The notes below the pieces were generated by a model, which saw only the letters and a program-made list of their open reading frames with translations, ran no database searches and was not told the origin of the DNA. A DNA stretch of 63,524 nt, filler included, from Hyphochytrium catenoides (lineage: Eukaryota > Protista > Hyphochytriomycota): assembly GCA_900088475.1 (NCBI GenBank). It is 9 parts of 9 records of this genome, joined end to end, with 100 filler letters (N's around TTAATTAATTAA, not from the genome) between each part and the next. Parts side by side here need not be neighbours in the genome. Positions count along the whole stretch, not along the records: positions 1 to 27,096 come from FLMG01004220.1; 8 more parts are not named here. One strand, given 5' to 3'. This document shows positions 2,344-26,452 of this stretch, one piece after another (the first letter of the stretch is position 1; each line of letters begins with the position of its first letter). Both the position numbers and the translations under genes were made by a program.

Positions 2344-3432
2344 TCAGCGGTCGTCAGAGGACGAGAGAGCCCGCGCCATGACAATGACAACGTCACTTGG
2401 CAAAGAGAAACCTTCTTCTCTGATTTTCTCTTTCTCTCCTCCAATGTTCTCTACTAGCTTCTCTAGGAAGATTCTTTCCCAGGCCTCCTCTGTCTTCTTG
2501 TTACTCGCCTGCTGGCCTTCATAAAAAGCTAAGAAGTCTTGCACTTTGTCAAACCTCATGGGGAGAGACAGAGTCTCCACTTTAAGTACTTCAAAGCCAG
2601 TCTCTTGTAAGAGAGACAGGTACGGCTCCAGTTTCCACAGAGAGAACGAAGAAAACGGTGTCTCTTCCATCTCTTTTACTGTCAACGGCTCCTCCCCCGC
2701 GAACCAGCCCCTCGCCTGCTTTAAGACTCTGAGAAACGGGACTTTGGAGGGGTGGGGCCAGTGAGAGGAGAGAAGTACACCTCCTTGCCCTCTAAGCAAC
2801 GTATGAAAGATGCCCAAGGTTTCCTTAAACTCCCGAACGTAGGGAAGACACAGAGAAGTTACGATGGCATCGTAGTTGCCTCTCCTCCCCTCTTCTTCCT
2901 CTCTCTCTGTCCCAGCGCCACGAGCAGCTCCGTTCTGCAGTTGGTCCAAAAGAGGACTGTCGGGGTCTATCCTTAGCAATACCATAGAAGAGGAAGCCTG
3001 GGCAGCTGAAGGGGTGGAAGAGGAAGATGAAGGAGAGGCATGTCTCGCTTCACCTTTCCTATCAAGGGCTAGGACCAGAGCGGCGTGTCTCTCCTTTGCT
3101 CTGGCCAGCATCTCTTCTGACCAGTCCGCCGTCACCACGTGAATGGGCCGAGAGACCAATCCATCTAACGCTGCATTGAGGATGGTGAGGGAAGGCTCAC
3201 CTGTTCCTGCGCCAAAGTCTAAGACGACCGCTCCCTTGTTTCTCTTTAGTCCTTCTCCCTTCTCTTTCTCTTCCTTTTTCTCTTCTTCATGATGCCTATC
3301 CAGCCCTTGATCTAGAAGCTCTGTCATGCGCGTATAGAGAGGCTGGAAACGGGTACGGAGTATCGGGTCATACTTTGGCGCCAGAGCGTTCCAGTCTTGC
3401 ATTGCAGCTTGATCCTCCTCTAGCTGGGGCAT
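2344..3432 (-). CDS. Class I SAM-dependent methyltransferase, intronless, 362 aa
   Basis: Motif I VVLDFGAGTGEPS, post-I VVTADWSEEMLARAK, motif II YDAIVTSLCLPYV, and motif III-like FHTLLRGQGGVLL. Confidence 0.85.
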   Translation of the reverse strand: MPQLEEDQAAMQDWNALAPKYDPILRTRFQPLYTRMTELLDQGLDRHHEEEKKEEKEKGEGLKRNKGAVVLDFGAGTGEPSLTILNAALDGLVSRPIHVVTADWSEEMLARAKERHAALVLALDRKGEARHASPSSSSSTPSAAQASSSMVLLRIDPDSPLLDQLQNGAARGAGTEREEEEGRRGNYDAIVTSLCLPYVREFKETLGIFHTLLRGQGGVLLSSHWPHPSKVPFLRVLKQARGWFAGEEPLTVKEMEETPFSSFSLWKLEPYLSLLQETGFEVLKVETLSLPMRFDKVQDFLAFYEGQQASNKKTEEAWERIFLEKLVENIGGEKEKIREEGFSLPSDVVIVMARALSSSDDR

Positions 3433-4948: not shown

Positions 4949-6058
4949 TCATCCCCAAGCGCTGTTCATGCTATAGTTCATCACCAGGGTACCATTCACC
5001 TGAAAGCACTAAATTACGAAGAAAATTTCTTAGCCCATCGAGAAAAGCTCTAACGCCAAAAAAGAGAGAGTGCATCGGTGGTAATTGTATTATAAAGTGC
5101 AAGAGATGCATTTGCTCAGAGGAAATTTTTTAGACCGCCGGACGGTGGAGGTGGCCGGGCGCGAACAAGCCAAAGCAAGACGGCGTAGAAGGAACTCTCA
5201 CCAAGCAGCGAAAGGTCACGAAGACGGCAGAGCCGGCAAGAGCACTACTTATTAAGAGCAGCAACAAAGTAGAAACAGATTGGAGGTGGAAAGGGATGTA
5301 GGAACAGCAAGAAGGCACAAGAGATGAGAGCAGAATGGAAACAAGATGGATCAGCAAACCTCATATAGCTGAGCGAGTGTGTCGTCGGGGCTCGGCGCAA
5401 AGGCAGCATTTACATAGAGGATCTATAACAGCAGAAGGAGTGGGTTTTGTGAGCCCTGCTTCTAGGTTCATTGATTGAGAAAGACATGAGACTTTGTCGA
5501 AGTAGACTTTGAGGGCCAGACTTCTACAGGTGTGAAGAAAGAGAGGTAAACGCGCACCAGCGGATCAGACTCTGAAAGCTTCAGCTGCTTTCTAAGAAAT
5601 GCAATGACCTGGGAGAGTTGAAGAGCACCATTTATGAGTGAATAGACGAAACATCGGGGGCGGAATGGTAAGAGATTGATTGAGGTGATGCAAAGTGGAA
5701 AGAAGGGTAACAGAGAACAATTGGATTCTATGAAGGACAGGCTACACCAAAGGCTTAGGCTAAGTGTGATGCGCACGATGAGGTTGGGAGGACCCGTCTT
5801 GCATACCACATGTACCGAATCCGAGGAGCTTACAAGGAACTTGTTCTTCTTCATGATGGGTGCACTCCCCACTGCCATGAACTGAAGCTTAACTGAGGAA
5901 GTTCCTTAGTTCCTCGTCTCCTTCTGCTCAACTGAGTGCTAGTTACCTTTCTCTGGTGCCAACTTTCTCCCATGAGAACTCACAGAAGCAGCAGATACAG
6001 TCCCTGGTAGACCTTCACTAGTCACCTGGTTAGCATCGCCAGCCTTTTCTTCTTCCAT
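4949..6058 (-). CDS. ATG12: Ubiquitin-like autophagy protein ATG12, 5 exons
   Basis: GT-AG splicing gives MEEEKAGDANQ...KVKLQFMAVGSAPIMKKNKFLVSSSDSVHV|VIAFLRKQLKLSESDPL|ILYVNAAFAPSPDDTLAQLYE|CFQVNGTLVMNYSMNSAWG*. It has the ATG12 motifs AVG.APIMK, F.PSPD and the terminal AWG. Confidence 0.95.
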
Positions 6059-8383: not shown

Positions 8384-11300
8384 ATGGCGACAACCTTAGA
8401 GGAGATAGGAGCAAAGCTCTTAGACTTTTCAGTGCCGTTTGACCTGGACGCACTTGAGTCAGTGGTGTCGACCTGCAATGAAGCCAACAACCCACAGGTA
8501 ACCAGCCAGTTAGGCTTTGAGGCCATCAATTTCCTTTATCTCTGACTGCAGACCTCGACCCTTCTAGCGTCCTCTGGCCAATAAGATCATGATGGCCCTT
8601 CAGGAGCATCCTGAGTCATGGACAAGGGCAGATGTGATTGTAGAACAGGCCAAGCTACCAAATACACGCTTCTTCGGCCTGCAGGTGAGTCTCTTGAATT
8701 CGTAGTTTCGATCGCCACTTTGCTTAGGTTGTTTTGCCACAGTTATTAGAAGATACCATAAAATATAGGTGGAATGCCATTGGGAGTAAGCAGAGGGACG
8801 GCATCAAGAACTATATCGTCTCTAAGATTATCGCGGTAGGCTCCCTATTTATTGTCCTAGTTGATCTTATCGGGTTGGGCTAACGCGTTAATTCCTCTTT
8901 CTGGCCTCTGTTGGCGGGCATGTTTCCTGTCGTGGTACGGAACAGCTATCGCAGGATGAGGCCACTATGGTCAAGGAGAAAGTGTTTCTGAACAAGCTTA
9001 ACCTAGTCCTTATCCAGGTAAGTCTCTTCTCTAGCTAGCCCATGGAAGAACGAAGAGAACAGCACCATTGAATCTTTGCTGTCAAACAGATCTTAAAGCA
9101 CGAATGGCCCCATAACTGGCCAACCTTCATCTCCGAGATTGTCACTGCGAGCAAGGTAAAGGATGGCGTTCATGTTCCCGTAGCTAGCAGCATAATGGTT
9201 TCGGCGTGCGCGCCATCGGCCGTTCTGTCTTCCTCTGTCCAGGAGTTTTGCAGTTCTGAGTTGTCGACTCCTTCCTTCACAGCCGCCAACTTTCCGTCGT
9301 TCCGCCTTCTCACTTGGTAATCTTCTTTCGCGTCGCATCCTGCTGCAAAGAACCTTTCCTCTCTCTCTTACATTATTGCCTGGAACTTTGTATCTTGCTA
9401 CCCATCAGACAAGTGAGATCATCTGTGAGAACAACATGAAGATACTGAAGCTTCTCAGTGAGGAGATCTTTGACTTCTCCAAGGACCAGATGACCTCACA
9501 GAAAATAAAGACAATGAAGGAGAGCCTTAATCACGAGTTTACTTTGATCTATCAGGTATGCGCATTTTTGTACTCGTACACCAGGATGATGACCTTACGC
9601 AAACTCTTCTTTGGCAGCTCTGTGAGTTTATCCTTGAGAACACTCAGCGGCCCTCCCTCGTGATTGTCGCACTGCAAACCTTTCTTCGCTTCTTATCCTG
9701 GATCCCTTTGGGTTACATCTTTGAGACTCAGATTATCCCGAAAATTATCAAGTACATGCGCATCCCCATGTTTCGCATTGATGCTGTGAGCTGCCTCACA
9801 GAAATTGCGGGTCTCACGGATGTTGGCACACAGTATGACCCTGTACTTCGAGAGCTCTATCTCAGCTTCATTACCCACCTTTCTCAGATTGTTCCTCCTG
9901 AAACCAACATTGCTGCCGCCTTTGATCAAGGGACGGACGCGGAGGAGGTGTTTATACAACGTGTCAGCTTGTTCCTGACCACCTTCTTTAAGGATCACAT
10001 CCGGGTGATCGAGGGGCAAGTTCAGACCTTGGGAGATGCCAACCACAACTCTCTTTTGATAGGGATGTCCTATCTCGTGAAGATTTCTATGGTGAACAAC
10101 GACGAGATCTTCAAAATTTGTTTAGATTATTGGCACTTCCTCTCTTCTGAGCTCTATACTTCGGACTCTTCCTTCAAAGGTCCTCAGCAAGTCCTGGCAA
10201 TCGGCCTCGGGTCTGCCCCGTCTCGTTCTCTGAAATTCCGAGCCATTCTTTCGCAAGTCCGAGTGGCGATGATCTCTCGCATGGCAAAGCCTGAGGAGGT
10301 TCTCATTGTGGAGGACGAGAATGGAGAGATTGTAAGAGAGACGACAAAGGACACCGAAGCGCTAGCTCAGTATAAGACGATGAGAGAGGCGCTAGTGTAT
10401 CTTACACACTTGGACTATGAAGATACAGAGAATATCATGCTTGACAAGCTTGCTAAGCAGGTAACACTAGATAGCACCGATTCCAAGAGGGGGTAGAAAC
10501 AGCCATGAAGCATTCACTAACCGCTACAGTGCAGCCGCGTAGATGGTATTTAGGCCTTGGATGGAGGAAAGTGGGACTTTTCAATAGTAGGCACAGATGG
10601 CGGGACAGAGTTCGGGAACGGTGCAGATTTTTGGAAGCGAAGCCTAGACTCAATTGGTTTCTGTTCTCCTGTTTGTATGGACAGTGCGATAACACCGAGT
10701 GGTCGTGGCATAACCTCAACACTCTGTGCTGGGCAATCGGTTCTATTAGTGGAGCCATGAGCGAAGAGGATGAGAAGCGGTTTTTGGTGATGGTAATCAA
10801 GGTGAGTTGAGGTCGTGCTCGAAGAGTTTAAGTAATTGGCTAATGTTTGGGGTGCACAGGACCTCTTAGGCTTATGCGAGATGAAGCGTGGAAAGGACAA
10901 CAAGGCGGTGGTGGCGTCTAACATTATGTATGTGGTGGGTCAATATCCACGCTTCCTGAGGGCGCACTGGAAGTTTTTGAAGACCGTGGTTAATAAGCTT
11001 TTCGAGTTCATGCACGAGTTGCATCCGGGCGTGCAGGTTAGACGCCCGCCTCTCTCACCCTTTTTGGCTTCAATCACTCTTGCTAATTATCTCTTGGCCA
11101 ATAGGATATGGCTTGTGACACCTTCTTGAAGATCAGTCAAAAGTGCAAGAAGAAGTTTGTCATGTTGCAACCCCAGGAGACAGAGCCTTTTGTGATGGAG
11201 CTACTGCACACGCTGCCAGCGATCATTTCTGACCTGGAGCCTCACCAGATCCATTCCTTTTACGAAGCAGTGGGATGTGAGTCATGTGCTTGGGAGCAGG

Positions 11301-13558
11301 ACGCACACTTGCTTCCTGTTGGCTCCTCACGGAGTCCTATTTCGCTTGTTGCCCCCTCTCTTTGCTGGCGCCGTGGCCTTTCCGTTCTGGCTTTATGGGG
11401 CGCATCATTTGCTCTCTACTCAACTACACAGCTCATGCATATTAGAATAACGTTCTCTCTGGCTCCTCCCGATAGGTATTATCTCTGCAGAGAATGATCC
11501 CCAGATGAGAGAACACCTTCTTCTTCGGCTGATGGCCCTTCCAAACGCCTCTTGGAAGAGCGTGATGTTGAACGCATCGCAAAGGATGGAGACGCTATAT
11601 GATCCAAACACGATCAAGGAGGTCTCCAAGATCATCAAGACCAACGTTAGCGTTTGCTCCACGGTCGGCCCATCGTTTGCTGCGCAGATGGGCGTCATTT
11701 ACATGGACATGCTGAATGTGTATAAGGCGTACAGCGAGCACATCTCAGCCACGGTGGCGGCAGAAGGGGAGCTTGCAACACGGAAGACATTGATCAGGTC
11801 AATGAGGTCAGCGAAGAAAGAAGCTCTGAAGCTTATTGAGGCCTTTGTAGAACACTCGACAGATCCTCAGGTGGGAGCTGTTGCAGGTTGATGGGAAGTA
11901 GCTTATCAGATGCTTAACCATCGCTTCCCTTTCCTCATAACCCTTTTCCTTCAAACCTTTCTGACAAAAAGATGGTCCGCAAGAACTTCATACCACCCAT
12001 GCTAGATCCTGTGCTTGGTGATTATCAGCGGAACATTGCACAGGCAAGAGATCCAGAGGTCTTGTCTCTGTTCGCGGCTATCATCAATAAGCTGAAAGCC
12101 ACGGTGGCAGAGGACGTGCCGAAGGTGCTAGAGGCCGTGTTTGAGTGCACGCTCCAGATGATCACACAGAACTTTCAGGATTTCCCCGAACATCGGATAA
12201 ACTTTTTCAAGTTGCTACAGGTAAACTTTTACTAGGCAAATAAAAAAAGCTACGGAGGCTACATCTCCTACGCAACGATGAGGAGGAAGAGACAGCTGAG
12301 ACGATAAACTTGCTAAGACGGAGACATTAGAAAGGCTGGGCCACAATGAGCGCCAGAATCGGAACGTGCCATCTTTCATCGATGTAATACCTGACCATTC
12401 TCCTCTCTTCAGGCTGTGAACTCCCACTGCTTCAGCGCTCTATTTAACATTCCTGCCAGCCATCAGAAGCTAGTGGTGGACTGCGTCGTGTGGGCCTTCA
12501 AGCATACAGAGAGAAATATTGCCGACACGGTAAGCAGCATAAAGAGTAGGTTCTGTTTGTTAAACTCTGCTGACGTACTGCTATTATTCTCCCTTCTAGG
12601 GTTTGGATATCCTCTATTCTCTGCTGCTTAACGTCCAGCAGAGCCCGGAGGTGGCCCAAGGATTCTACATGTCGTTTTATCTCTCTCTGTTGCAAGACGT
12701 GCTGAGCGTGGTGACTGATCGGCTGCATAAAAATGCCTTCAAGATGCACGCTACTATCCTGAAGCACCTGTTCCATCTCGTGGAGATGGGCCAGGTCACT
12801 GTGCCGCTGTGGGAGAGCATTGGGCAGAGCCAGCCTCAGGGCCAAACAAATCAGGGCTTTATGAGAGAATACGTGATGCATCTTTTAACCACTGCCTTTC
12901 CCAACGTCTCAAGGTAAGTCAATAGGTATACATTGATGAAGGAGGATGACAGTGTTGAACCATTTACCGTCTTGCCGCTGGCGTTTGTCAAAAATAATCT
13001 TTGATTCCCTTGGTCACTGAGAGAATCCTGTCACGGTCCTCGCTGTCTTTATGTGTGACAACCTTCTCATTGTCCTGGTGCTGATAATACTGCAGGCACC
13101 AGATTCAGGCCTTCGTGGTTGGATGCTTTAATCTGAAAAACGATCTTCCGGCTTTCAAGATGCATCTTAGGGACTTCCTTGTCCAACTTAAGGTAGAAGC
13201 GGCTTGCGGCCAGAGATAGTGATGATTGACGGAGAGAATGGGAGACGATACGCCAAGCATTCCCTATTGGGGAAATGGCTGGAGGGAAGGAGCAGTCCAT
13301 GGCAGGGTTACAGGGTTTGACCGCTTCGAGTTGTGGCTGGCTGAGGCAGTCGGCAAAAGAAACGAAGGGCAATAATGAATGCTAGATCAATACTAACATG
13401 ATCTGCAGGAGTTCTCGGGTGAAGACAACGCCGACCTCTTCAACGAAGAGCGGATAGCAGCACAGAAGCTGGAATCAGAGAAGCTGATGGCAGCGAAGCT
13501 TGCAGTGCCTGGGCTGGTGAACCCACATGAACGCCCAGACGATATGGCAGACTTATAA
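8384..13558 (+). CDS. XPO1: Exportin-1 (CRM1) paralogue A, complete, 16 exons; keeps the LMB-target Cys (TGC at 10875-10877)
   Basis: All 15 introns can be traced as GT-AG from [16 protein letters not shown] to [21 protein letters not shown]. Conserved CRM1 blocks include [10 protein letters not shown], the acidic loop [75 protein letters not shown] and [12 protein letters not shown]. Confidence 0.97.
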
Positions 13559-15006
13559 TGAGGACGCCGGAGGACGGGTATCGGATAGACAGAGACACAG
13601 AAGGAGGCGTTTGATGTGTCCGAAAGGGAATCAGGCAGGGTTGATGGAGGGGAATGGAGAAATAGTTATTTTATTTAGCTAGGCATACCCGGTGCCATGC
13701 TGGACTTCAGAGGCTGAGGGACCTCAGTATTCTTGTTTGCTGCACCAGAGTAACATAATGTGGTCCCAGCGGGTTTCACATTGATTGTTGTGGAGACGCA
13801 GCGCTATGATATCAGAACGTTTACCCTCTATCCCTCAGCTCCGATCACAATCTCTTCCCCTCTACTTTTCTGGGCCTCATCAAGCTCTCTGAACCAGCCG
13901 CGCCTTGGGGCCGAAGCGATAGGAGACCGCTTTGTCATTCAACTAATCCTGTTCATGGTGCTCACCCTCTTTAGACTGAGGTTATCAGCTGATAGCATTC
14001 ACTTCCTAAATAAGAAGCTACATGCCCAGGGCGGCCGACAGTGAGTGTGCCTCATGAACATGAACATCCCGCTGCTTTCCTGGGCTCCGACGTCAACAGC
14101 AAGAGTGTGGCAGTGGGGCGACTGCAGCTTCTGCGTTGGCAGCAACTTGGTGAACTGCTGGTGGCGTGGGAACTCGGTGAAGAGATAAAATAGTGCATTC
14201 TTTTATCAAAGGACCATTTCTATTTATTTATTATTTCTAAGTTATCCCTGATGGAATGATGTCAAATTATGCCGATTCTTTACTTTATTTAGTTATAAAT
14301 TTCCCAAGGAACAAATCATCATAACTTTATTGGAGAGCGCATATTTTTGGAATCCAAAAAGTAAGAAATCAAACTTTCATCAGAAGATCTGTGGGGAGCG
14401 TGGAAGGTGAGACGTGGGAAGAGACAGAGCGACTAGAGATGAGGACGCCTATCGGGATTGTAGGTATTGAGAACAAACAGAGTGATAAGAAGAGACGAGG
14501 GAAAGGAATTCTGGATAGGAAGTGGACTGCCGAGAGAGAAATGAGAGAGAGAAATGGGGAGAGAGAGGAAGAGAGAGGGAGAGAAAGGGAAAGAGGAAGA
14601 GAGAGAGAGACAGAGCGAGAGAGAGAAACGAGAGAGAGAAGAGGGGGAGAGCGAGAGAGGACCAAGAGAGAGGGAAAAGAGAGAGGGAAGAGAGAGGGCA
14701 AAGAGAGGCACAGGAGAGAGGCAGGAGAAGAGAGGGACAACGAGACAGAGGGCGGCACCAGAGAGACAGTTGATCCAAGCATTATTGCAGACGAAGAACG
14801 CCAGGAAGCTGGACGGACAATTTGCTTCTCACTGGCCGGGCAGACGTCGAGCTCCGGACACCGCACCAAACATTCTTAGCGCTGCCGCAGAGAGAAAGAG
14901 AGATTCTGGTCTCTCTTCCACGTACAATCGAACACTTCGTTCTGGAAGCGAGGTAGAAGGTTGAGGCCTTCCTCTCTCTATTTGTCGGGAGGAAGCTAGC
15001 GCTACC

Positions 15007-15286
15007 ATGGGTTCAATAGAAGAGGCAGGGAAGAAGCTTCTGGACTTCTCTCAGCCTTTTGAACTTCCTCTTCTCGAGAATGTTGTCAGCGCCTTCAATG
15101 ATCCTCACCACCCACAGGTATGGAGCTATGGATCTTCCGTCGTACCGTAGGAGAGATATTACCTTGGGTCAACTTTTTCTGTCGTCTCGCTTGCTGCATC
15201 TCGTTTCCACCCGGGCAGTCATTCTCCGGGGACTCCTGTGGGCGTCTTCACCAAGCTTTCCCGTCTTTTCTGCCTTCTGCTTTCGA

Positions 15287-15321
<35 letters not shown>

Positions 15322-18300
15322 CTCTCTCTTTCTCGCTCTCTCTCTCTCCGGTCGAGATGCCCCTCTTTCCGAATATGGGGTGGCTAACCTAACTCGCTCG
15401 TTCGCCTGCTACAGAGGGCCGTGGCCAACAAAGTGCTGATGGCTCTGCAGGAGCATCCTGAAGCCTGGACTAGAGCGGACGTCATTCTTGAAAACTCTTC
15501 TAGTACTAACACGCGCTTCTTTGGACTGCAGGTAAGCCTCGTGCTCTGTTCCTCTCTTCCGCATGTTTACGCTGAGCCCTTGCTCTCTCTCTCTCCCTCT
15601 TTCTCTCCGTTGGTCTCTGTCTGTCTGTCTATTTGTCTGTGTCTCTTCTCTGTGCGCTGCTCCTTTTTTGTAGTTGTTAGAAGACGCGATTCGTTACCGC
15701 TGGAAGATTGTGCCAGCAGAGCAGCGACATGGCATCAGGAACTATATCGTGCAGAAAATCCTCGTGGTGAGTCTTCTAACTTTGCTTGCCGTGAACAGGT
15801 TCATCCCTGCTTCCTCTTGATTGGTTCAGCCTTCCTAGTCTATTGCCATAGTCGGACACGCTGGTTGAAGCTCTCTTCAACACTATCCTCTTGTTGTTGA
15901 GGTGGTTGTCTTGAAATGCTCCTGTTTCCTCGCTCTTTGGCTCTGCTCATGCCCTTCTCTCTCTCCCTCTCGCGCGCGGGTCTTCTTCCTCTCTCTCGCT
16001 GCTCTCCCTCTATGTCTCTGTTGCTCTGCGTGTGGCCGTTCATCTACCTATGGCTTGCCGCCCTGGCTTCTTGCCTGCTATCTTATTCGATCCTGGTTGG
16101 TGGTGCAGCTATCAAAGGACGAAGCAACCATGTCCAGAGAGAAAGTGTTCTTGCATAAGCTGAACCTTGTTCTTATTCAGGTGAAGCACCTTCCCTGACC
16201 TAGGCACCTGACAGTCTACCTTTCTAGCCACTCTCTGAGATCTCTCTCTCTCTCTCTCCCCATATATTTATATGCTCTCTTTCGGCTTTCTGCCCTCAAT
16301 CTCTAAACCTTTTTTAGTCCTATCCTCTCCATTGAGAGTTTTGGTCAGCCTTCTCTTTAGTCTACACTGCGCGATTTTGCTTCTCTGCTTCGCCGCCATC
16401 CCAAGTCCGCTCTAATATTAAATCTCTTCACCACTATTCCCTATCTCTATGCTAATATTCTCTCTGCCTTTTCTCTTTTCCGCTATAGATTCTTAAGCAC
16501 GAGTGGCCTCACAATTGGCCTGAGTTTATCAGTGAGATTGTCTCAGCAAGCAAGGTATGCTCTGACTCTCTCTCCCCACACTTATTCTCCATGGTTTCCT
16601 GGTCCTGGAACGACGAACCTCTTTATAGTCTCTATTTTTTCAGCTTTCTGTCTCATCTAATGCACTACCATTCCCCCTCTCCAGGTTCTGTCTATCTGAC
16701 TTCCCTCTCATTCACGCCTCATCTCTCTCTCTCTCTCTCCCCTCTCTTTTCCCCACTGACCTCTATGAACACACAATGTCCTATAGACTAGTGAGATTCT
16801 CTGTGAGAACAACATGCACATTCTGAAGCTTCTGAGCGAGGAAGTGTTTGACTTCTCCAAGGACCAAATGACCACCCAGAAGACAAAGACTATGAAGGAA
16901 AGTCTTAACAGTGAATTTACCAAGGTTTATCAGGTATGCCGACTGCTGATCTTTGTATTAATTGGGCTTTTTCTAGGGGATCTCCTTTTTCTCTGTCCTC
17001 TCTTTCCCTCTATCACTCCCTCTCTCGTGTGGTGGATACCAATTCTCCGTCTCACCTGAGGCAGCACTAATCCTCAAAAACTCTGCTGAACCCCAAAGCT
17101 CTCTTCCACGATCTTTTGCCACTCTTCTTCTATCCATTTCTCGGCAGGCTGAATGGTAGTGAGGACATTCTTTCCCCCTAAAAAGCTATCCTCGTCGTTG
17201 AGCGTTCTACCTCCCTCAGATCATCTATCCTCTTCCTTTTTCTCACATAACACATGTTCTTTTCTTCTCTCTCCCTCTCTGTGTGTCTCTCTCGCCTGTT
17301 ACAGCTTTGCGAGTTCATCATTGAACACTCCCAGCGGCCCCAGCTTATCACCATCACCCTGCAGACGCTACTTCGCTTTCTCTCCTGGATTCCTCTTGGC
17401 TATGTCTTCGAGACCAAACTCATTCCCACGCTAGTCACCAAGTTTCCTCCAGCTCCCGCCTTCAGATCGGACGCCGTTAGTTGCCTTACAGAGATAGCCA
17501 ACCTCTCGGACGTAGGGGAGAAGTACAACCACGTCTTTCTCTCTCTTTATCTTAGCTTTATAGGGCAGCTCACGAGGATCGTATCTCCTGACTCTAACAT
17601 TGCTGCGGCGTTCGAGAGAAGCTCCGATGCTGATCAGATCTTCATACAGCGTCTCTCTCTCTTTTTCACCTCTTTCTTCAAGAATCACATCAAGGTCATT
17701 GAGTCACAGATAACCGCCCTCGGGGATGAGCACCACAAGGCACTTGTCATCGGACTCACGTACCTCGTACGGATCTCTGAAGTACAGGATGACCAGATTT
17801 TCAAAATCTGTCTCGAGTATTGGCACTATTTGGCCAATGATCTCTACCTGAATGTGAAGATCCCGCAACAGGTGGTTCTTTTAGGCATGAAACCCCAGGG
17901 CGTAGCAAACAATCGTATTGCAAAGTTTGCGGCCGTTCTCTCTCAGGTGCGGCTGGTGATGATCTCTCGCATGGCCAAGCCCGAGGAGGTTCTGATTGTC
18001 GAAGATGAGAACGGAGAAATAGTGAGAGAGACAACCAAGGACACGGAGGCTTTGGCTCAGTATAAGACGATGCGAGAGGCGCTGGTCTATCTCACGCACT
18101 TGGACTATGAAGATACAGAGAATATCATGCTTGACAAGCTTGCTAAGCAGGTAATGTGGGCGAGACTAGGACAGCGTCCGCATTTTCGCGGAAACTAGGG
18201 GAGAGACGTGGAAGCGTTCAATAGAAGAAAGAGATTTTTAAAGAGGAAAGAGAAAGGCAGTAATGTGGAAGGCTCAGCGGTAGAAGAAAGAAGAACAATG

Positions 18301-20231
18301 GCGGACGAGATGGTAACGGTAGCGAGGGAGGAAGTCGCTCTCTCCACCTTTACCTTAGCCTTGCTGCTTCCTTCTCCCCCTTGTCTTCAGTGTGATAACA
18401 GCGAGTGGTCATGGCACAATCTGAACACTTTGTGCTGGGCCATCGGTTCCATCAGTGGGGCGATGAGCGAAGAAGATGAGAAGCGCTTCTTAGTCACAGT
18501 CATCAAGGTAAGAGCTTCATCTACTCTTGCTCTCTCTAGATGTTTGGTTATTCCATTGCAGGTCAAACACGTTTTCCGAATCCCTTTCCTCCTCTCCCTC
18601 TTTCCAAGATAGTGCTGCTCCTTCCCTTCCTTCGAATATCACTTTTTCCCTCTTTGCTTGCTGACTCGATCTCTCCAATGTGCATATGCTCGCAGGACCT
18701 CTTGGGGCTGACGGAGATGAAGCGTGGAAAGGACAACAAGGCGGTGGTGGCGTCTAATATTATGTATGTGGTGGGCCAATATCCACGCTTCTTGAGAGCC
18801 CACTGGAAGTTCTTGAAGACTGTGGTCAACAAGCTATTCGAGTTCATGCACGAGCTGCATCCAGGCGTGCAGGTGATAGCCACAGATCTCTTTTAGCTCT
18901 TGGAACCACTTTCCCGCTTCCCTCCTCTGTCTTTTATGTCGCTTGCTTCAGGAAGCTATACTCTCACTCTTGGATGTCACCTCCGTCGTCACTCTGTTCG
19001 GTAGTGCGTTCGCTTTCTTCCTCTACAACGTCCGGCCCGGGTTGCTATTCTGCTTTCGCTCTCTCTCTGTCTCTTTCTGTCTCTTTCCTCTCACTTCTGT
19101 TCACTACATCACCTTGCGGTACAATGTAGGTCCCCTATCGCTGAATCATCTGCTCTAGTTCTGCCTCTGTCTCCGTTCAAACGCTTCCAACTGCTCACGA
19201 CCTCTCTGTGCCACGGCAGGACATGGCGTGTGATACTTTCCTGAAGATTAGTCAGAAGTGCAAGAAGAAGTTTGTTACGCTGCAGCCTCAGGAGACAGAG
19301 CCTTTCATCGTAGAGCTTCTGCAGACCCTCCCAGCCATTATCTCAGACCTGGAGACCCATCAGATCCACTCATTCTATGAAGCTGTTGCTTGTACGCCCA
19401 GCACACCAGCGCCTTTCTAGCTGTCGTTCCAACTTCTCCTTCGCCACACTGAGCCTCCTCTTGTCCTTGCGAGCCTGCAGTTGCTCCCGTTTCTCGGCCT
19501 TTCCCTCCTTCGTACATGTTCCTCTAAGCCTCCTTTTTCTCACAGGCATGATCTCGGCTGAGAATGACCTTCGCGTTCGAGAGCAGCTCCTTATGCGGCT
19601 AATGGCCCTTCCTAACACTGCGTGGACCAACGTCATGCTCGCGGCCTCTCAGCGTATGGAAACTCTATACGAGGCCAACACTATCAAAGAAGTCTCCAAG
19701 ATCTTGCGAACAAACGTGGCTGTCTGCGCATCGGTTGGGCCATCATTTGCCGCGCAGATGGGCGTCATATATATGGACATGTTGAACGTCTATAAGGCTT
19801 ATAGTGAGCATATATCGGCCACCGTTGCTGCAGAGGGAGAGCTGGCAACACGAAAGACGCTTATTCGGTCGATGAGATCAGCGAAGAAAGAGGCGCTCAA
19901 GCTTATTGAGGCCTTTGTGGAGAACTGTACCGACCCGCAGGTAAAGCTAGGGAGATAAAGAAGGGCGAGAGGTGGAAAGGGAGCGTCATGCTTGAGGAAG
20001 AGACTGAAAAAGGGACAATGGGACAGCATCAAAGAAAGCAAGACGAGACAGGTTTGGGAGGTGAAGAGTTTAAGCGGCAGAGCACCTTTTGGGAGAGATT
20101 GAGAGGTCGTCTCTCCTCTGCCGCGTTGTCTCCTGCAACTTTGATCAATCGCTCCAGATGTCTCTCACCTCTCCCTACCGGACTAGATTACCTGTAGTTG
20201 ACACTGTTGGTTCCTTGTTTCTCTCTCTCTG

Positions 20232-20265
<34 letters not shown>

Positions 20266-22049
20266 TCTGTCTCTCTCTCTCTCCCTCCCTCGTCCTTTAT
20301 TACATAGATGGTTCGTCAGAACTTCATACCACCGATGCTGGACCCTGTGTTGGGAGATTATCAGAGAACAATTCCTCAAGCGAGAGACCCAGAGGTCTTG
20401 TCTCTGTTCGCGGCTATCATCAATAAGCTGAAGGCCACGGTGGCAGAGGACGTTCCGAAGGTGCTAGAGGCCGTGTTTGAGTGCACGCTCCAGATGATCA
20501 CACAGAACTTTCAGGACTTCCCCGAACATAGGATCAACTTCTTCAAACTGCTGCAGGTGCGACTGACTGTGAACGAGAAACACGGGGGAAATAAAGACAA
20601 GGACAGGCGCATGAAGGGATAAAGGGAGAGGAGGAAGAAAGAATGAGTGTCGTTGCATTTCCCTTTAAAAGTGGAAGAGGACGACACACACATCTTCTCA
20701 AGTGAAAGAGAGCCAGAGAAATACTTCCTGAGTATGAATGAAAGAGGTGTGATAGCAGACTTAGGTTGGCAAAGAGTGCAGAGGCCCTCTTGTCATGCCT
20801 TTCTCAGCCCTATTGCGTGGTCCTCATCCTTTTCTCCTCCCTTGCTTCATGTGCTCTGTCCCTGTAGGCGGTCAACTCGCACTGTTTCCGAGCAATTTTC
20901 AACATTCCTGCCAGCCATCAGAAGTTAGTAGTGGACTGCGTGGTCTGGGCCTTCAAGCATACAGAGAGGAACATTGCTGATACGGTAAGCAGCGTTAAGA
21001 AAATGAGAGATGGTTGCCTAAACTCTGCTCACGATTGGCTGTTGTTCTCCCTTTCCAGGGCTTGGATATCCTCTATTCTCTGCTGCTTAACGTCCAGCAG
21101 AGCCCTGAGGTGGCGCAAGGATTCTACATGTCGTTCTACCTCTCTCTGTTACAGGATGTGCTGAGCGTGGTGACTGACCGGCTGCATAAGAGCGCCTTCA
21201 AAATGCACGCCACCATTCTAAAGCACCTGTTCCATCTTGTCGAGATGGGCCAGGTCACTGTGCCGCTGTGGGAGAGCATTGGCCAGAGTCAGCCTCAGGG
21301 CCAGACAAATCAGGGCTTTATGAGAGAATACGTGATGCATCTCTTAACTACTGCCTTCCCTAACGTCTCTAAGTAAGTGTTGGCCCTGAAGCAAGGGCAC
21401 GCTCCAGAAGGGAAGATGATGGATGGGGATGAGAGACCAAATGAATAGATAGACAAATAGCTACTAAGGAAGACACTGTGGAGAGAGAGAGAGATTCAGT
21501 AGGAGGTCCAGCCTTGGTTTGTTTAAGCTTAGACCTTCTGTCTAACAGGCAGCAGGTGCATAACTTCGTGGTGGGCTGCTTTGACATCAAGAAAGATCTT
21601 CCCGCCTTCAAGACCCATCTTCGGGACTTTCTCGTGCAGCTCAAGGTGAGATAGATTGGCCCTAGGCGCAAAGGAGTGTTTGCCCTCTGTGCGAGGCATC
21701 TCTCATGGTTGCCTCGTTATCTACCTGTGATTCATCGGCAACCGCTCTTCCCGGTTCTCTCTTCGTGCTCTTAGATTTCCTGAACCACTGCTTCTCAATT
21801 TCTAGGATCGCCTACTTCTTTCCCTAGTTTACCTTTTTCAGTCAAATCTTGCTCATTTCTGACCTCTGTGTTATATGGACTACTGTTCATTTGCTGTAGG
21901 AGTTCTCGGGTGAAGACAATGCCGATCTGTATCATGAAGAAAGAGCCGCAGCTCAAAAGCTGCAGACAGAGCAGGCTATGGCAGCCAAACTTGCTGTCCC
22001 AGGGCTGGTAAACCCGCATGAAAGACCAGATGACATGGCAGACCTTTAG
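15007..22049 (+). CDS. XPO1: Exportin-1 (CRM1) paralogue B, complete, 16 exons; Thr at the LMB-target position (ACG at 18711-18713)
   Basis: The same 15 intron positions as copy A give an uninterrupted frame from [15 protein letters not shown] to [21 protein letters not shown]. The CRM1 blocks match copy A, except [15 protein letters not shown]. Confidence 0.97.
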
Positions 22050-22747
22050 GCCAATGCTGTGCCTCAGAGTGTCAGAGAAGGACACAGCGAGAGAAGCGCG
22101 ACGGAAGGTGCACGGACTTAGATGTCGTTTTATGGTACAAGCTGTTGTTGGAGAGTTCTTTAAGTGTAGCTGGAAAGCCATCTCTATCTCTCGCTTCTTC
22201 TTCTTCTTCTCTCTCTCTCTCTCTCTCTCGCCGCGTGCTCGCTTGTGGCGGCTGGTTCTAATGATCTTGGTCTTGGGTCTGGTCTTTTCGCTCCTTTAAA
22301 ACTCTTGTTTCTCTCTTCCCCTCCTGTCAGTTAAGAGGGCTAGATCATTGATCTTCAGGGATAACTATCCAAATAGACAGACTGTAGATAGACTCTGCCC
22401 GCACCAGACTGTCGTTATCAAGCCACCGATATTGGAGAGAAGAGGAAACGCAATGACAGAACCGCTATGTACAGAAAGGCGCTTTGAAGTCTCTTCTGCG
22501 TCGCCTTCTATGCGAGTCGAACAGTGGCAATCCAGCACCGATTTTAGCACCACTGTTCGCCTAGAGACTGGGGTCTGCTTCAAAGGCCCAAGGATTACTG
22601 GGAGGTGGGAGAGAGCCCAGAGTTAAGGGAAGTGTAGGGCGAGTGTTCCATCGCGTACTAGATGAGAAGGGAGAGGGCAATAGTCTGACAGAGACATCTG
22701 CACGGTGGGAGGCAGATGCCTTGTCTAAGGCTAGAAGGGAGAGAAGA

Positions 22748-25340
22748 TCAGCAGAGAGCGATTGGTAAGCCGTGGGGAAAAGGATACGCATCAAGGAAGG
22801 CGTTAGCGCATTGCCGCAGAGCCAGGTTGGGAATGAGCATCTCTCGCTGTAGCCGCTGTCTAGATATAGGGTCTGTTGGTCCATTTTGCTCCAGATGCTT
22901 CTCAATCCACTTCTTCTCGTAGCTAGAATAGAGAAAGCAGATCACGTCGATCAGAGCACCGTCCTGGGCAGAAGCGCCCATTAAGCAGGAAATACTGGAT
23001 GAAGGGAACTTATAGAAGCTTTGTGCAAGGAGGAGCTTGTGAATGCAATCAGAGCGCTAAGCCAGTCGGGAAGAAAGATGGTGAACAAGGAGAGAAAAAA
23101 AGCTTACGTGACTCCGCTGGGCGCGATGACAGGCTCTCTAACTATGTCCATAGTTATGGCACAGCAGAGGTGGTCAGGGATCTCTTGCCGAGAAGCGAGC
23201 TGCAGAGTGGTAAGACAGAGACGCAAAAACATTAAAAAGATAAAAACGATAGACATCACGAAGACGAGGGAGAGAAGCGAAAGAGCAAAGAAAGAAGAAC
23301 AGACAGAGAAAAGAACACACGGACGGGAGACATAGGATGAGAAGGTAGGCCACAGTACGACAAGGAGAGAAGAGTTGAGAGACCGAGGTTGAGTGACAGA
23401 GACAAACGAACCAGAAGAGAGAGGGAGAAACGAGGAAAGGCAGAGCGGGCATAGTAGAATATCCACTAGTGAAAGTCTCTGCTAATAAAGATGAAAGATG
23501 GGACCGTGACAGTATCAGGAGACTCTGAACCGCGTTTGAAGCAGCCTACTCTCCTACCTGCGACTCGACTAGATTGTGCAAGAGTCTTCTCCGACGATTG
23601 AAGCTCTTCCTTATCCTGCTCCCAAGACATTAAAAAGTAGCGCGCCAAGGCAACAGAGGCGAGAGCCAGAGAGCGAGGGCTGGAGTAGAAAGAAAAGGGA
23701 GTAATTGTAGCTAAGGAAAGAGACATCGGGGCCAGTAGGGAGCTTGAGGAGAGCAGCACACGGCTGCAGAAGCCGTTGAGAGAATCCCGCAGAAAGCAAA
23801 GCCCGAGGAGAAACATGGTAACCGAGATAAACAGGCATAGCAAGCAACTGAATCTACGAAGATAGTATTGTGACAGACCTGTCTACCGCTTCCTCCTTCT
23901 CAGCAGCGGAGAAGCTAACATTCTCCAGTGCTTTTCTAGTCTCTTCCTCCTCTTTCTCATGGAGCAATGGGAAAGCATAAGCGCTCAGCTCCTCGAGGTC
24001 TTGCCTCCGAGTCTTCTGTTCCAGCTCCCACTTTCTTTTCATAGCCCTGAGAGAGAGAGAAAGAGAGACACGCATACAAGAGAAGGGCCCGAGAAAACGT
24101 TAGACAGATAGAGAGAGAATGAAGCAGAAGAAGGTAAGACCCAGGATCTAGAAAAGACACTAAAGATAGGAGGCTATAGCCGAGCCAAGAGCAGGAACAG
24201 GTTTATTATAGATAGAGAGAAAAAGAAGTGAACAAGATACTTCTCAAACAAGCAGAAGGAGACAGAAGGAGCACGAGCATCCTTACCGTCTCATCTCTGT
24301 CTCTATCTCCTCCCACATGGCTGCTCCCTTGGGTTGCTTGGAGGCTTGCATCTGCGCCTCCTTGAGAAGCTTCACTCCGTCTTCCCAGTTCTCTCTCTCA
24401 CAAAGAGCCAAGCCTAAGAGATAACTTCCTTTGAAGTTGTTCCGGTCCAGGTCAAGAGCCTTCTTGCAGTCATAGACGACTGAGTCCCAGGACTTTAGCT
24501 GCCGCGGGATGAACAGCCAGAGTGGAGGGTCGAAGGGAAGGGCAGAAAGAGGAAGAGTGAGAGAGATGAGAAAGAGAGAGAGAAGATACGCAATGGGAAA
24601 GAAAGAGAAGATACGCAATGGGAAAGAAAGCAAGAGGAACAGGAGGGAAAGAGAAAAGACACCTGAGCACCAGATGAGGCGCAGTGACAAGAGCGATGAA
24701 GCGGAACAGATAGGTAGAAATGGGAAAACAAGGAATCTCTGGGTCGATGAAGTGACAAAAGAGTTGGGGAGACGGCAATCGCTAAGGCCCTCGTGTCTCT
24801 CTCCCTCTTTCTTTTGACATATCTTCTTCTTCTCTCTTCCCTCCCGTCTTCTTCATCTCTCTTTTTTTCCCCTCTCTCCTCAGTTACAAGCTCTTCTTTA
24901 AGCCCCCACCTGTCCCACACCCGCTAGCGGAGCAGGTTGGCTTACCTTCATATGACAAAGAGCTCTATTCGTGTACAGCGTAGAAGTCTTGGAGTCGAAG
25001 CACTGCAAAGGAAGGAAGAAGGAAGAACCTTAAGAGGACAGAGCTCAAAGAGGGCCTCAGAACAAGAGCTAGGGAAGGTGGTCCCAGCTGGTATGGTTGA
25101 CAGAAGCCAAAAGTCAAACCGAGCCAGAGACAGAGGCGTGAGACACAGAGACTAATAGCAGGGACAAGGGAGTCACCCATGGGTAGTTCTGGGCATGAGG
25201 AGTCAAAGTGGGATACAGCGAAGGTGTTCCTGAGGTTGAGAACTTACGATTGCCTCGGTATAGGCCTCTATGGCAGCTCCATATTTATGTCTCTTGAAGA
25301 GGGCATTGCCTTTATCTTTCAAACTCTCAGCCACCGACAT
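22748..25340 (-). CDS. STUB1: CHIP/STUB1-like TPR + U-box E3 ubiquitin ligase, multi-exon
   Basis: TPR exons read MSVAESLKDKGNALFKRHKYGAAIEAYTEAI, CFDSKTSTLYTNRALCHMK and LKSWDSVVYDCKKALDLDRNNFKGSYLLG. U-box exons read EIPDHLCCAITMDIVREPVIAPSGVT and YEKKWIEKHLEQNGPTDPISRQRLQREMLIPNLALRQ. Middle exon boundaries are approximate. Confidence 0.9.
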
Positions 25341-26058
25341 CTTGCTCGTCCAGGCTTTCCTCGTAGCTTTGTGTCCTAGGTATGTCTATCGGCGGCGTAG
25401 CCAGACGTCTTCTCTACTTAGGCAGCCGGCAGCAGCGTGGAACTCCAGCTTCTACAGGGCGCCTGCTGCCTCTCTGCCGCCCCTCAGAATACCTGTCCCT
25501 TAACACCAGCCGTCCCTTTCCTGCTCAGGTCTGGCCTCCTTCTACCCAGCTGGCCTAAGCTTCACTAGCAAACAAGAGCCTTGGACAGGGGGCTGCTTCC
25601 GTCCGTAGAAAGCCGATAGCAGCGGGCGAAGAGCTGAGAAATGTCGCTGCTGATGCTGCCACGGGCGCTGGAACTGATGAGGAAGAGTGAGGGAGGAAGG
25701 AGGAGGAAGGAGGAGGACAAACAACAGCAACAATGGGGGTGGAGATCATGTGATGAACTAGACATATGATAATCACATACGTTGATCTATTCTTTGATTG
25801 AACCAGAAAACAGCGGATGGGGGTAAGAGACAGAGGAACTAAAAGACTGTACATATGTAGAAGAAGAGAGAGAGAGATATTGACACAGACAGAGTGAGGG
25901 GATTATAAGAGAGAGGTTTGTTTTAGCGAGACAGAGACAGAGGAAGTCAAAGGAATCGAGCAGAAAGAGTGACAGAGAGAATCGGACGCAGAGAGAGAGA
26001 GAGAGACACCAGCAGGGAGAGAATTAGGAAACAGAGAGTGAAGTAGCCAGGGGAGAAG

Positions 26059-26106
<48 letters not shown>

Positions 26107-26452
26107 TGCTATGCATTCTGAAGATTTGTTCAGCGATCAATCATGCATCACGTCTCCTCGAGCACTCCGTGGTCACGGCGAAGGTCAACAGAGTGCAGGC
26201 CACGCTTAGACCAAGCGGTACGAGTAGTGAGAGGAAGGAGGAGAGAGAGAGAGAGGAAGAGGACAAGCGAGAGGAAGTGGCAGAAGAGAGAGGAAGAGAG
26301 AGAGACAGATGAACCGGGAAGGCAATATCAGTTTTAGCCAACGAGACTCCTAAACTGACAGCCTTCCGTCGCCTCTTTAAAATCTGAAGAAGGTATACCT
26401 TGGGGGGAGAGGACGAAAGACAAAGAGGACAGACGCGGAGCTGTATCCTGCC

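Follow-up and report, generated by a model that had tools for sequence, protein, structure and literature searches.

Tandem exportin-1 genes with cysteine and threonine at the inhibitor-reactive position in Hyphochytrium catenoides

The genome of Hyphochytrium catenoides contains two complete exportin-1 (CRM1/XPO1) genes, arranged head-to-tail on the + strand and 1,448 bp apart, which differ at the residue targeted by covalent CRM1 inhibitors: copy A has Cys529 and copy B has Thr529. The explanation that we prefer, with a probability of roughly 60%, is an old, lineage-specific tandem duplication of CRM1/XPO1, in which both copies were kept by purifying selection and partly homogenised, and in which the Thr of copy B is most likely incidental. 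CRM1, the single essential export receptor for NES cargo, has been validated as a drug target, and one and the same cysteine is exploited by all of its inhibitors. All positions below refer to the window, that is, the whole stretch of 63,524 nucleotides analysed here.

Copy A (8384–13558, + strand) and copy B (15007–22049, + strand) each comprise 16 exons encoding 1079 amino acids, based on splice models, PF08767 and PDB matches. The exons of copy A are located at 8384–8497, 8568–8684, 8743–8835, 8946–9017, 9090–9155, 9409–9555, 9618–10460, 10685–10801, 10860–11036, 11105–11276, 11476–11870, 11972–12220, 12413–12529, 12600–12913, 13096–13192 and 13409–13558 (stop codon included). Those of copy B are located at 15007–15117, 15415–15531, 15674–15766, 16109–16180, 16489–16554, 16787–16933, 17305–18150, 18391–18507, 18696–18872, 19220–19391, 19546–19940, 20308–20556, 20868–20984, 21059–21372, 21549–21645 and 21900–22049 (stop codon included), and most of its introns exceed those of copy A in length. 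Using HMM-guided splice choice and top-scoring junctions, all 15 introns of each copy were modelled as GT–AG, with positions and phases that match between the copies, and all 30 splice sites of copy B are canonical. Each coding sequence is 3240 nt long and ends in one terminal stop, without internal stops. Self-BLASTN and TBLASTX recovered 16 collinear conserved blocks between A and B, and the introns between these blocks are unalignable except for intron 13.

The spacer from the stop codon of A to the ATG of B (13559–15006, 1448 bp) contains a low-complexity tract and no N, and its ORFs gave no Pfam match. These splice models and the spacer length bear out the earlier note, which had described two intact 16-exon XPO1 genes lying 1.45 kb apart on one contig. 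A search of the whole 61-Mb assembly recovered no CRM1 locus other than these two, both on contig C2273. The tandem join rests on this one gap-free contig. The upstream regions of A and B are unrelated beyond approximately 18 nt before the ATG, so that separate regulation of the two genes would be possible.

Both 1079-aa models align end-to-end (residues ~3–1078) with full-length CRM1s at 45–62% identity, and both have the complete exportin-1 architecture (Xpo1, CRM1 repeats and CRM1_C, about 1070 aa), with exon matches to PF08767 (CRM1_C) above the cut-off. Exon 9 of each copy matches human CRM1 and PDB exportin-1 chains with E values of about 1e-32. The HEAT-9 acidic-loop region (residues ~430–470) is identical in A and B, both putative RanGTP-dependent exporters of NES cargo.

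The Cys/Thr difference lies in exon 9 (A, 10860–11036; B, 18696–18872; both + strand), which encodes NES-groove helices of HEAT 11–12. The 59-aa exon-9 peptides of A and B differ at a single residue, 529, which is encoded in copy A by TGC (10875–10877, + strand, inside gacctcttaggcttaTGCgagatgaag) and in copy B by ACG (18711–18713, + strand, inside gacctcttggggctgACGgagatgaag). The two codons differ at all three positions, just as had been noticed on first reading, and 14 further differences in the exon 9 sequence tell the copies apart. When phmmer was run against PDB chains, residue 1 of each peptide aligned with K522 of full-length human XPO1 (3gb8_A), so the Cys of A and the Thr of B fall on human C528, as the earlier note had proposed; the same site is C529 in Schizosaccharomyces pombe and T539 in Saccharomyces cerevisiae. 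The reactive Cys is thus present in copy A and absent from copy B. Over the larger interval of residues 425–601, the copies differ only by T488S, M520T and C529T. The residues named for the human NES groove are I521, L525, K537, M545, V565, K568, L569, E571 and F572 (PMC10374058), and A and B both have the counterparts of all of these (human number +1), without any difference between the copies.

A and B are sisters with a support of 100 in the 66-row tree and in the 138-row tree alike, and they form their own lineage inside the ochrophyte/stramenopile clade. Cys occupies the site in 118 of the 122 sequences of a stramenopile-rich list, and the position of the pair inside this Cys clade implies that copy B gained its Thr later than the duplication. 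We therefore regard Cys as the ancestral state of the lineage and Thr as derived in copy B, a polarity that the sequence comparisons support. The closest database relative of the pair shows approximately 60% identity, and a search with exon 7, in a collection that lacks the window's own ORFs, gave no match above 52% identity. In a protein search with a CRM1 query, the matches were all from green plants and algae; plant CRM1s are slow-evolving, and the result is uninformative on the host.

The two proteins share 82% of their amino acids, with dS of approximately 1.9 (saturated), dN of 0.12 and dN/dS of 0.066. A saturated dS together with a low dN/dS indicates that the duplication is old and that both copies are under purifying selection; these values support the conclusion that both are intact and maintained by selection. 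Most of the 18% protein divergence is located in the N-terminal half, and the differences are concentrated in columns that vary across the family (p ~9e-20). Copy B has a shorter branch than A and more often retains the family-consensus residue; it is the more conservative copy overall, and not a specialised offshoot.

These data also bear on the possibility that the pair is an artefact, either a mis-assembled tandem that joins unlinked or foreign copies, or a functional gene followed by an unexpressed relic. The region was found in low-coverage DNA runs of one study only, probably the assembly's own data, which leaves some room for this reading. However, the contig contains no N, and 64–87% of sampled 31-mers from 12900–18899 were present in each of three runs. 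Moreover, the 15 shared intron positions and phases, the similar GC3 (0.63 in each copy) and the sister phylogeny indicate that both copies belong to one genome, and a gene that had long been a pseudogene could not have kept a 3240-nt ORF and 30 canonical splice sites at dS ~1.9 and dN/dS 0.07. We consider an artefact or a dead copy very improbable; copy B could nevertheless be silent or condition-specific in its expression.

Synonymous divergence between A and B is a mosaic. Exons 13 and 14, together with intron 13 between them (A, 12413–12913, + strand; B, 20868–21372), form the only stretch in which an intron can still be aligned, at 86.7% identity over 513 nt. The 4-fold divergence of exon 14 is low (0.27), and the segment is a likely gene-conversion tract. 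A second candidate tract is located in exon 12 (A, 12053–12178, + strand, residues 799–840; B, 20389–20514), where runs of 14 and 19 synonymous sites are unchanged, the 19-site run being significant in a permutation test (p = 0.007). The change at codon 529 is situated at the margin of a stretch with little divergence and is the sole amino-acid substitution in an otherwise invariant 59-aa exon, a pattern that would also fit selection holding the Cys and Thr states apart. Such a split could be actively maintained if conversion repeatedly homogenised the C-terminal two-thirds of the genes while selection purged any overwriting of codon 529, but we think this quite unlikely. The unchanged synonymous run that follows codon 529 does not reach significance (p = 0.21).

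S. cerevisiae is not known to have more than one CRM1 gene, which encodes Thr at this site. As the earlier note had stated, its wild-type protein (Thr539) is not inhibited by LMB, and the T539C form is (PMC4256259). Like copy B, yeast Crm1 carries its Thr at the exact position and in the conserved DLLGL-x-E context, so that by sequence B would fall in the naturally insensitive class that the yeast protein typifies; here, however, the Thr copy stands in tandem with a Cys copy, and its insensitivity is argued by analogy. When a human XPO1 allele without the Cys (C528S) is placed beside a Cys allele, resistance to covalent inhibitors is dominant (PMC5356594). Heterozygous C528S cells resemble the present organism in having one Cys and one non-Cys exportin-1 per cell, but those alleles are engineered and one residue apart, whereas A and B are paralogues of natural origin that diverge by 18% and have separate upstream regions. 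Given Thr at the C528 position, yeast T539 and the dominance of human C528S, copy B is very plausibly insensitive to these inhibitors, and by the same analogy it should protect the cell from them if it is expressed. Two exportin-1 paralogues are also retained in one genome in Arabidopsis (XPO1A and XPO1B), and entries named EXPORTIN 1A and 1B-like were found among the plant CRM1 matches. These two plant genes are not linked to each other and each retains Cys, and we know of no inhibitor-sensitivity split described between them. The literature that we searched contained nothing relevant on a Cys/Thr pair of CRM1 paralogues or on the pharmacology of stramenopile CRM1.

The site proved to be labile across eukaryotes. 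Among 102 CRM1 cluster representatives, the position of human C528 is occupied by Cys in 71, Val in 15, Thr in 12, Ser in two, and His and Gly in one each, so that 31 (about 30%) are without Cys, and at least 21 state changes were counted on a 66-tip CRM1 tree. In a plant-rich match list, Cys was found in 116 of 119 sequences. Natural non-Cys CRM1s include Aspergillus nidulans AN1401 (Thr) and those of Auxenochlorella (Thr), Klebsormidium (Val), Adineta (Val) and a diatom related to Nitzschia (Thr); Thr was gained independently in this diatom and elsewhere. The earlier note had held that its interpretation would fail if Thr were common at this site in single-copy orthologues of relatives. This is borne out in part: across eukaryotes, loss of Cys is frequent, but this does not extend to the nearest, stramenopile relatives. 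Within HEAT 11–12, the variability of column 529 is middling (rank 31 of 101), so that to call the site nearly neutral is an assumption.

Like copy B, the natural non-Cys CRM1s have a conserved groove apart from the Thr or Val at this site; unlike B, they are lone genes, without a Cys copy nearby, on the contigs inspected. No second CRM1 was found within the contigs examined around three of the Thr or Val carriers, where an unlinked copy elsewhere is possible, and a duplicate is thus not needed to lose the Cys. The recurrence of Cys/Thr pairs that the earlier note had asked about was therefore not seen beside other carriers, and the closest relatives available for comparison are only about 60% identical. 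An apparent fused tandem CRM1 pair in another organism is a gene model with an internal repeat and two identical Cys segments; it is probably an artefact and was set aside.

The earlier note had read the pair as a case of target-duplication resistance. In a fuller form of this reading, B would serve as a toxin-proof back-up when bacterial polyketide CRM1 inhibitors alkylate A, and the Cys form would be retained because it performs better or can be regulated. Several observations agree with this: the Thr of B is a derived state against a background of Cys, resistance of the non-Cys form is dominant in human cells, the codon differs at all three positions while the rest of the exon peptide is invariant, with an unchanged synonymous run beside it, the unrelated upstream regions would permit separate regulation, and both copies are under strong constraint. 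On the other hand, the site changes very often, and other lineages simply replace the Cys, with no second CRM1 on the contigs examined, which makes a duplication unnecessary. In addition, B is the more conservative copy, A and B differ at 191 positions besides 529, and the synonymous run falls short of significance, as given above. The intact, maintained copies, the Thr at the C528 site and the ancestral Cys all stand, but the adaptive account is weakened by the labile site and the lone carriers, and we regard it as unlikely. A related possibility, self-resistance of a producer with the resistant target beside a biosynthetic cluster, was rejected, since the flanks of the pair contain a methyltransferase, an ATG12 fragment and a TPR and U-box gene, and no PKS/NRPS-like genes or other biosynthetic cluster were found in them.

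A different division of labour would rely on redox chemistry. The groove Cys of A would be reversibly modified by S-nitrosylation, oxidation or endogenous electrophiles, keeping stress factors in the nucleus, and B, constitutive and blind to such modification, would sustain housekeeping export, for example of ribosomal subunits. Inhibition of CRM1 by S-nitrosylation is reported in a review (PMC6769533, citing Wang et al. 2009), engagement of Cys528 of XPO1 by metabolite-type electrophiles has been modelled or demonstrated (PMC10374058), and the N-terminal divergence between A and B could reflect different partners. This evidence comes entirely from mammalian cells, however, and the lability of the site and the single-gene carriers count equally against this proposal, which we judge decidedly improbable.

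We thus return to an ancient tandem duplication of CRM1/XPO1 in a poorly sampled, stramenopile-affiliated protist, a duplication that is unlikely to have begun as a dedicated means of resistance. Purifying selection has kept both paralogues, and gene conversion has probably homogenised, in part, stretches of their C-terminal two-thirds. Copy A has kept the ancestral groove Cys and copy B exchanged it for Thr after the duplication, leaving the other named groove residues unchanged. Judging from yeast and human genetics, B would still bind NES cargo and would not be alkylated at 529 by leptomycin, ratjadone, anguinomycin or SINEs, nor modified there by electrophiles or NO; resistance at this site being dominant, expression of B should be enough to make the cell tolerant of these agents. 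The exchange of Cys for Thr is most likely another case in which this residue, as it often does across eukaryotes, turned over at low cost, and the pair may owe its retention to something else, such as dosage, differential expression or subfunctionalisation of the N-terminal region.

What has been documented is a natural paralogue pair with a predicted pharmacological difference, for which a purpose-built resistance system is a possible reading. If the split were actively maintained, a sensitive or regulatable A beside an electrophile-proof B would give a eukaryote natural protection from thiol stress or from bacterial inhibitors of CRM1; no built-in target-duplication defence of this type for CRM1 was described in the literature searched. 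The occurrence of Cys and Thr forms side by side offers a ready-made isogenic comparison of the cost or benefit of the cysteine, in kinetics or redox control, and the pair could show whether microbial toxins shape the eukaryotic transport machinery. For the family as a whole, the supposedly conserved cysteine has been lost many times and is missing from about 30% of the cluster representatives, which matters for the use of LMB and SINEs in non-model eukaryotes.

Two copies of the exportin-1 (CRM1/XPO1) gene, here called A and B, lie in tandem on contig FLMG01004220.1, which occupies positions 1 to 27,096 and contains no N in its 27,096 bp. A self-comparison of the contig resolved 16 collinear blocks with 64–91% DNA identity, separated by unalignable sequence. 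Splice models were built with an HMM of 52 full-length CRM1 representatives, scoring all in-frame GT/GC...AG junctions between neighbouring blocks; for 15 of 15 introns in both genes there was a clear top junction, always GT-AG, at homologous position and in equal phase. The resulting models, A at 8384–13558 and B at 15007–22049 (both plus strand), each have 16 exons, a 3240-nt coding sequence and a 1079-residue product with a stop only at the end, as expected from the two intact 16-exon genes described in the earlier note, and the separation of 1.45 kb given there was measured as 1448 bp from the stop of A to the ATG of B. The span of B (7.0 kb) exceeds that of A (5.2 kb), and introns are mostly longer in B. 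Both genes are unambiguous members of the exportin-1 family, and searches with Pfam CRM1_C and the exon-9 peptide found only these two CRM1 loci in the 61-Mb assembly of 4,759 contigs; their linkage is read from this one gap-free contig. Introns and intergenic DNA are dotted with many short CT/GA-rich low-complexity tracts, which cross-match in self-BLAST (approximately 340–400, 860–925, 1680–1760, 15286–15350 and 20212–20302; 24536–24586, 25962–26111 and 26229–26311; and about 14.5–14.75 kb in the A–B spacer, including 14545–14586).

Re-reading the sequence located the Cys codon of A (TGC, 10875–10877, within DLLGL-C-EMK) and the Thr codon of B (ACG, 18711–18713, within DLLGL-T-EMK) exactly as noted earlier, with all three codon positions changed. 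Against all PDB chains (phmmer), both exon-9 peptides match exportin-1 with E values of about 1e-32 to 1e-35, and their first residue aligns with K522 of full-length human XPO1; thus the seventh residue (529 in A and B) is human C528, the identity given in the earlier note. In the human protein the groove residues include I521, L525, K537, M545, V565, K568 and L569 (PMC10374058). A and B both retain the equivalents of these, and of E571 and F572, with no difference between the copies, and over residues 425–601, which extend from the HEAT-9 acidic loop to include HEAT 11–12, only T488S, M520T and C529T separate them. With its groove otherwise intact, B should bind cargo normally, and Michael-acceptor inhibitors should not alkylate it; cells in which both A and B are expressed should tolerate them. 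These predictions rest on two precedents: wild-type Crm1 of Saccharomyces cerevisiae, with Thr539, is not inhibited by leptomycin B (LMB), and the T539C mutant is (PMC4256259, which bears out the earlier note), and in human cells heterozygous C528S confers the same selinexor resistance as homozygous C528S, so that resistance is dominant (PMC5356594).

The two proteins are 82% identical (883 of 1075 aligned residues). Synonymous divergence is saturated (pS 0.69, dS about 1.9), with dN 0.12 and dN/dS 0.066 (Nei–Gojobori), and therefore the duplication is ancient and purifying selection on both copies has been strong through most of their history. Pseudogene status was rejected, since a 3.2-kb ORF and 30 canonical splice sites could not survive such divergence. 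Both a maximum-likelihood tree of 66 rows and a FastTree of 138 rows place A and B as sisters with support of 100, in a lineage of their own within a well-supported clade of pelagophytes, diatoms, Pinguiococcus and other ochrophytes. The best database identities, to diatom and pelagophyte CRM1s, are only about 59–62%, so the host is a poorly sampled, stramenopile-affiliated protist; a search with exon 7 gave no match above 52% identity. A stramenopile-rich match list has Cys at site 529 in 118 of its 122 sequences, and B groups with no other Thr-bearing sequence in the 138-row tree. Thus Cys is the ancestral state of the site, and B acquired its Thr once the duplication had taken place, by a minimum of two non-synonymous steps and one synonymous step.

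The odd copy of the pair is not B. Its terminal branch is shorter than that of A in both trees (0.08 versus 0.12, and 0.084 versus 0.16), it scores higher than A against most outgroups, and at differing columns it carries the family-consensus residue 58 times, compared with 44 for A. The 192 amino-acid differences are concentrated at residues 1–420 and 600–700 and fall overwhelmingly in family-variable columns (Mann–Whitney p about 9e-20), which is the mark of ordinary divergence under constraint.

Exons differ in their divergence at 4-fold degenerate sites (chi-square p = 4e-5), with values of 0.26–0.32 in exons 9, 12 and 14 and of 0.57–0.89 in most others. Intron 13 is the sole intron still alignable between the copies (local score 29, shuffled maximum 13), and exon 13, intron 13 and exon 14 form a single 513-nt BLASTN match of 86.7% identity (A 12413–12913, B 20868–21372). 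Further tracts of the mosaic were delimited by synonymous divergence at A 12053–12178 (B 20389–20514) and A 10407–10460 (B 18097–18150), and runs of unchanged synonymous sites exceed the permutation expectation at residues 821–840 (p = 0.007) and 467–484 (p = 0.02). Together these features suggest that gene conversion once affected parts of the C-terminal two-thirds of an otherwise saturated pair. Around the Cys/Thr site (10863–10919 in A, 18699–18755 in B), all four codons 526–529 differ, and the 13 synonymous sites at residues 530–543 are unchanged, a run that is not significant alone (p = 0.21); the low-divergence stretch thus has codon 529 at its edge. Such an arrangement would be expected were conversion prevented from overwriting residue 529, and we offer a "protected island of divergence" purely as a hypothesis.

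Among 102 CRM1 representatives (50% clusters) covering the column, the site is C in 71, V in 15, T in 12, S in 2, H in 1 and G in 1, so that Cys is missing in 31, with Val about as common as Thr. Non-Cys carriers include Aspergillus nidulans and Auxenochlorella (T) and Klebsormidium and Adineta (V). The rarity of Thr in relatives, on which the earlier note depended, therefore holds for the stramenopile-rich list and not family-wide. On a tree of 66 tips, parsimony requires 21 or more changes of state, and site 529 is among the evolutionarily flexible groove positions. A Thr-bearing diatom CRM1 (P0513) is separated from the Cys-bearing CRM1 of a Nitzschia (P0481) by only about 0.09 substitutions per site and represents a very recent, independent change from Cys to Thr; no second CRM1 is seen on the 6-kb Logan contig that carries it (L014). 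One EukProt gene model (P0204, 1431 aa) has residues ~347–697 twice, identical and with Cys in both; this is probably an assembly or annotation artefact rather than a real internal duplication.

The earlier note read the pair as adaptive target-duplication resistance, which we do not accept as demonstrated. Besides the flexibility of the site, three Thr/Val carriers with inspectable contigs each have one CRM1 gene among unrelated neighbours, indicating that Cys loss needs no nearby back-up copy, and the locus occurs in three low-coverage DNA runs of one study and in no RNA run. Nor was a biosynthetic cluster found in the flanks examined. Upstream of A, on the minus strand, are a 362-aa single-exon class I SAM methyltransferase ORF (2347–3432; Methyltransf_23, E 2e-8) and an ORF fragment of ATG12, a ubiquitin-like autophagy protein (5471–5878, E 8e-7). 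Downstream of B, minus-strand U-box (23107–23466, E 1.5e-5) and weakly matching TPR (24286–24690) ORF fragments suggest a CHIP/STUB1-like E3 ligase gene at 22564–24690. We put the probability of a selectively maintained sensitive-plus-resistant exportin pair at about 15–20%. Another possibility is a redox reading, in which the Cys would make A regulatable and B would be constitutive: CRM1 is reportedly inhibited by S-nitrosylation (PMC6769533), but the evidence comes from mammals only.

In the literature searched, we found no description of a natural genome with tandem Cys and Thr copies. Retained CRM1 paralogues are known from plants, a natural Thr at the site, as in B, was already known from yeast, and dominance of a non-Cys allele was known from engineered human cells, whereas A and B are a natural pair. 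They constitute an exportin-1 pair with a predicted pharmacological difference, and the frequent absence of the Cys across the family bears on the use of LMB and SINEs, the covalent inhibitors aimed at it, in non-model eukaryotes.
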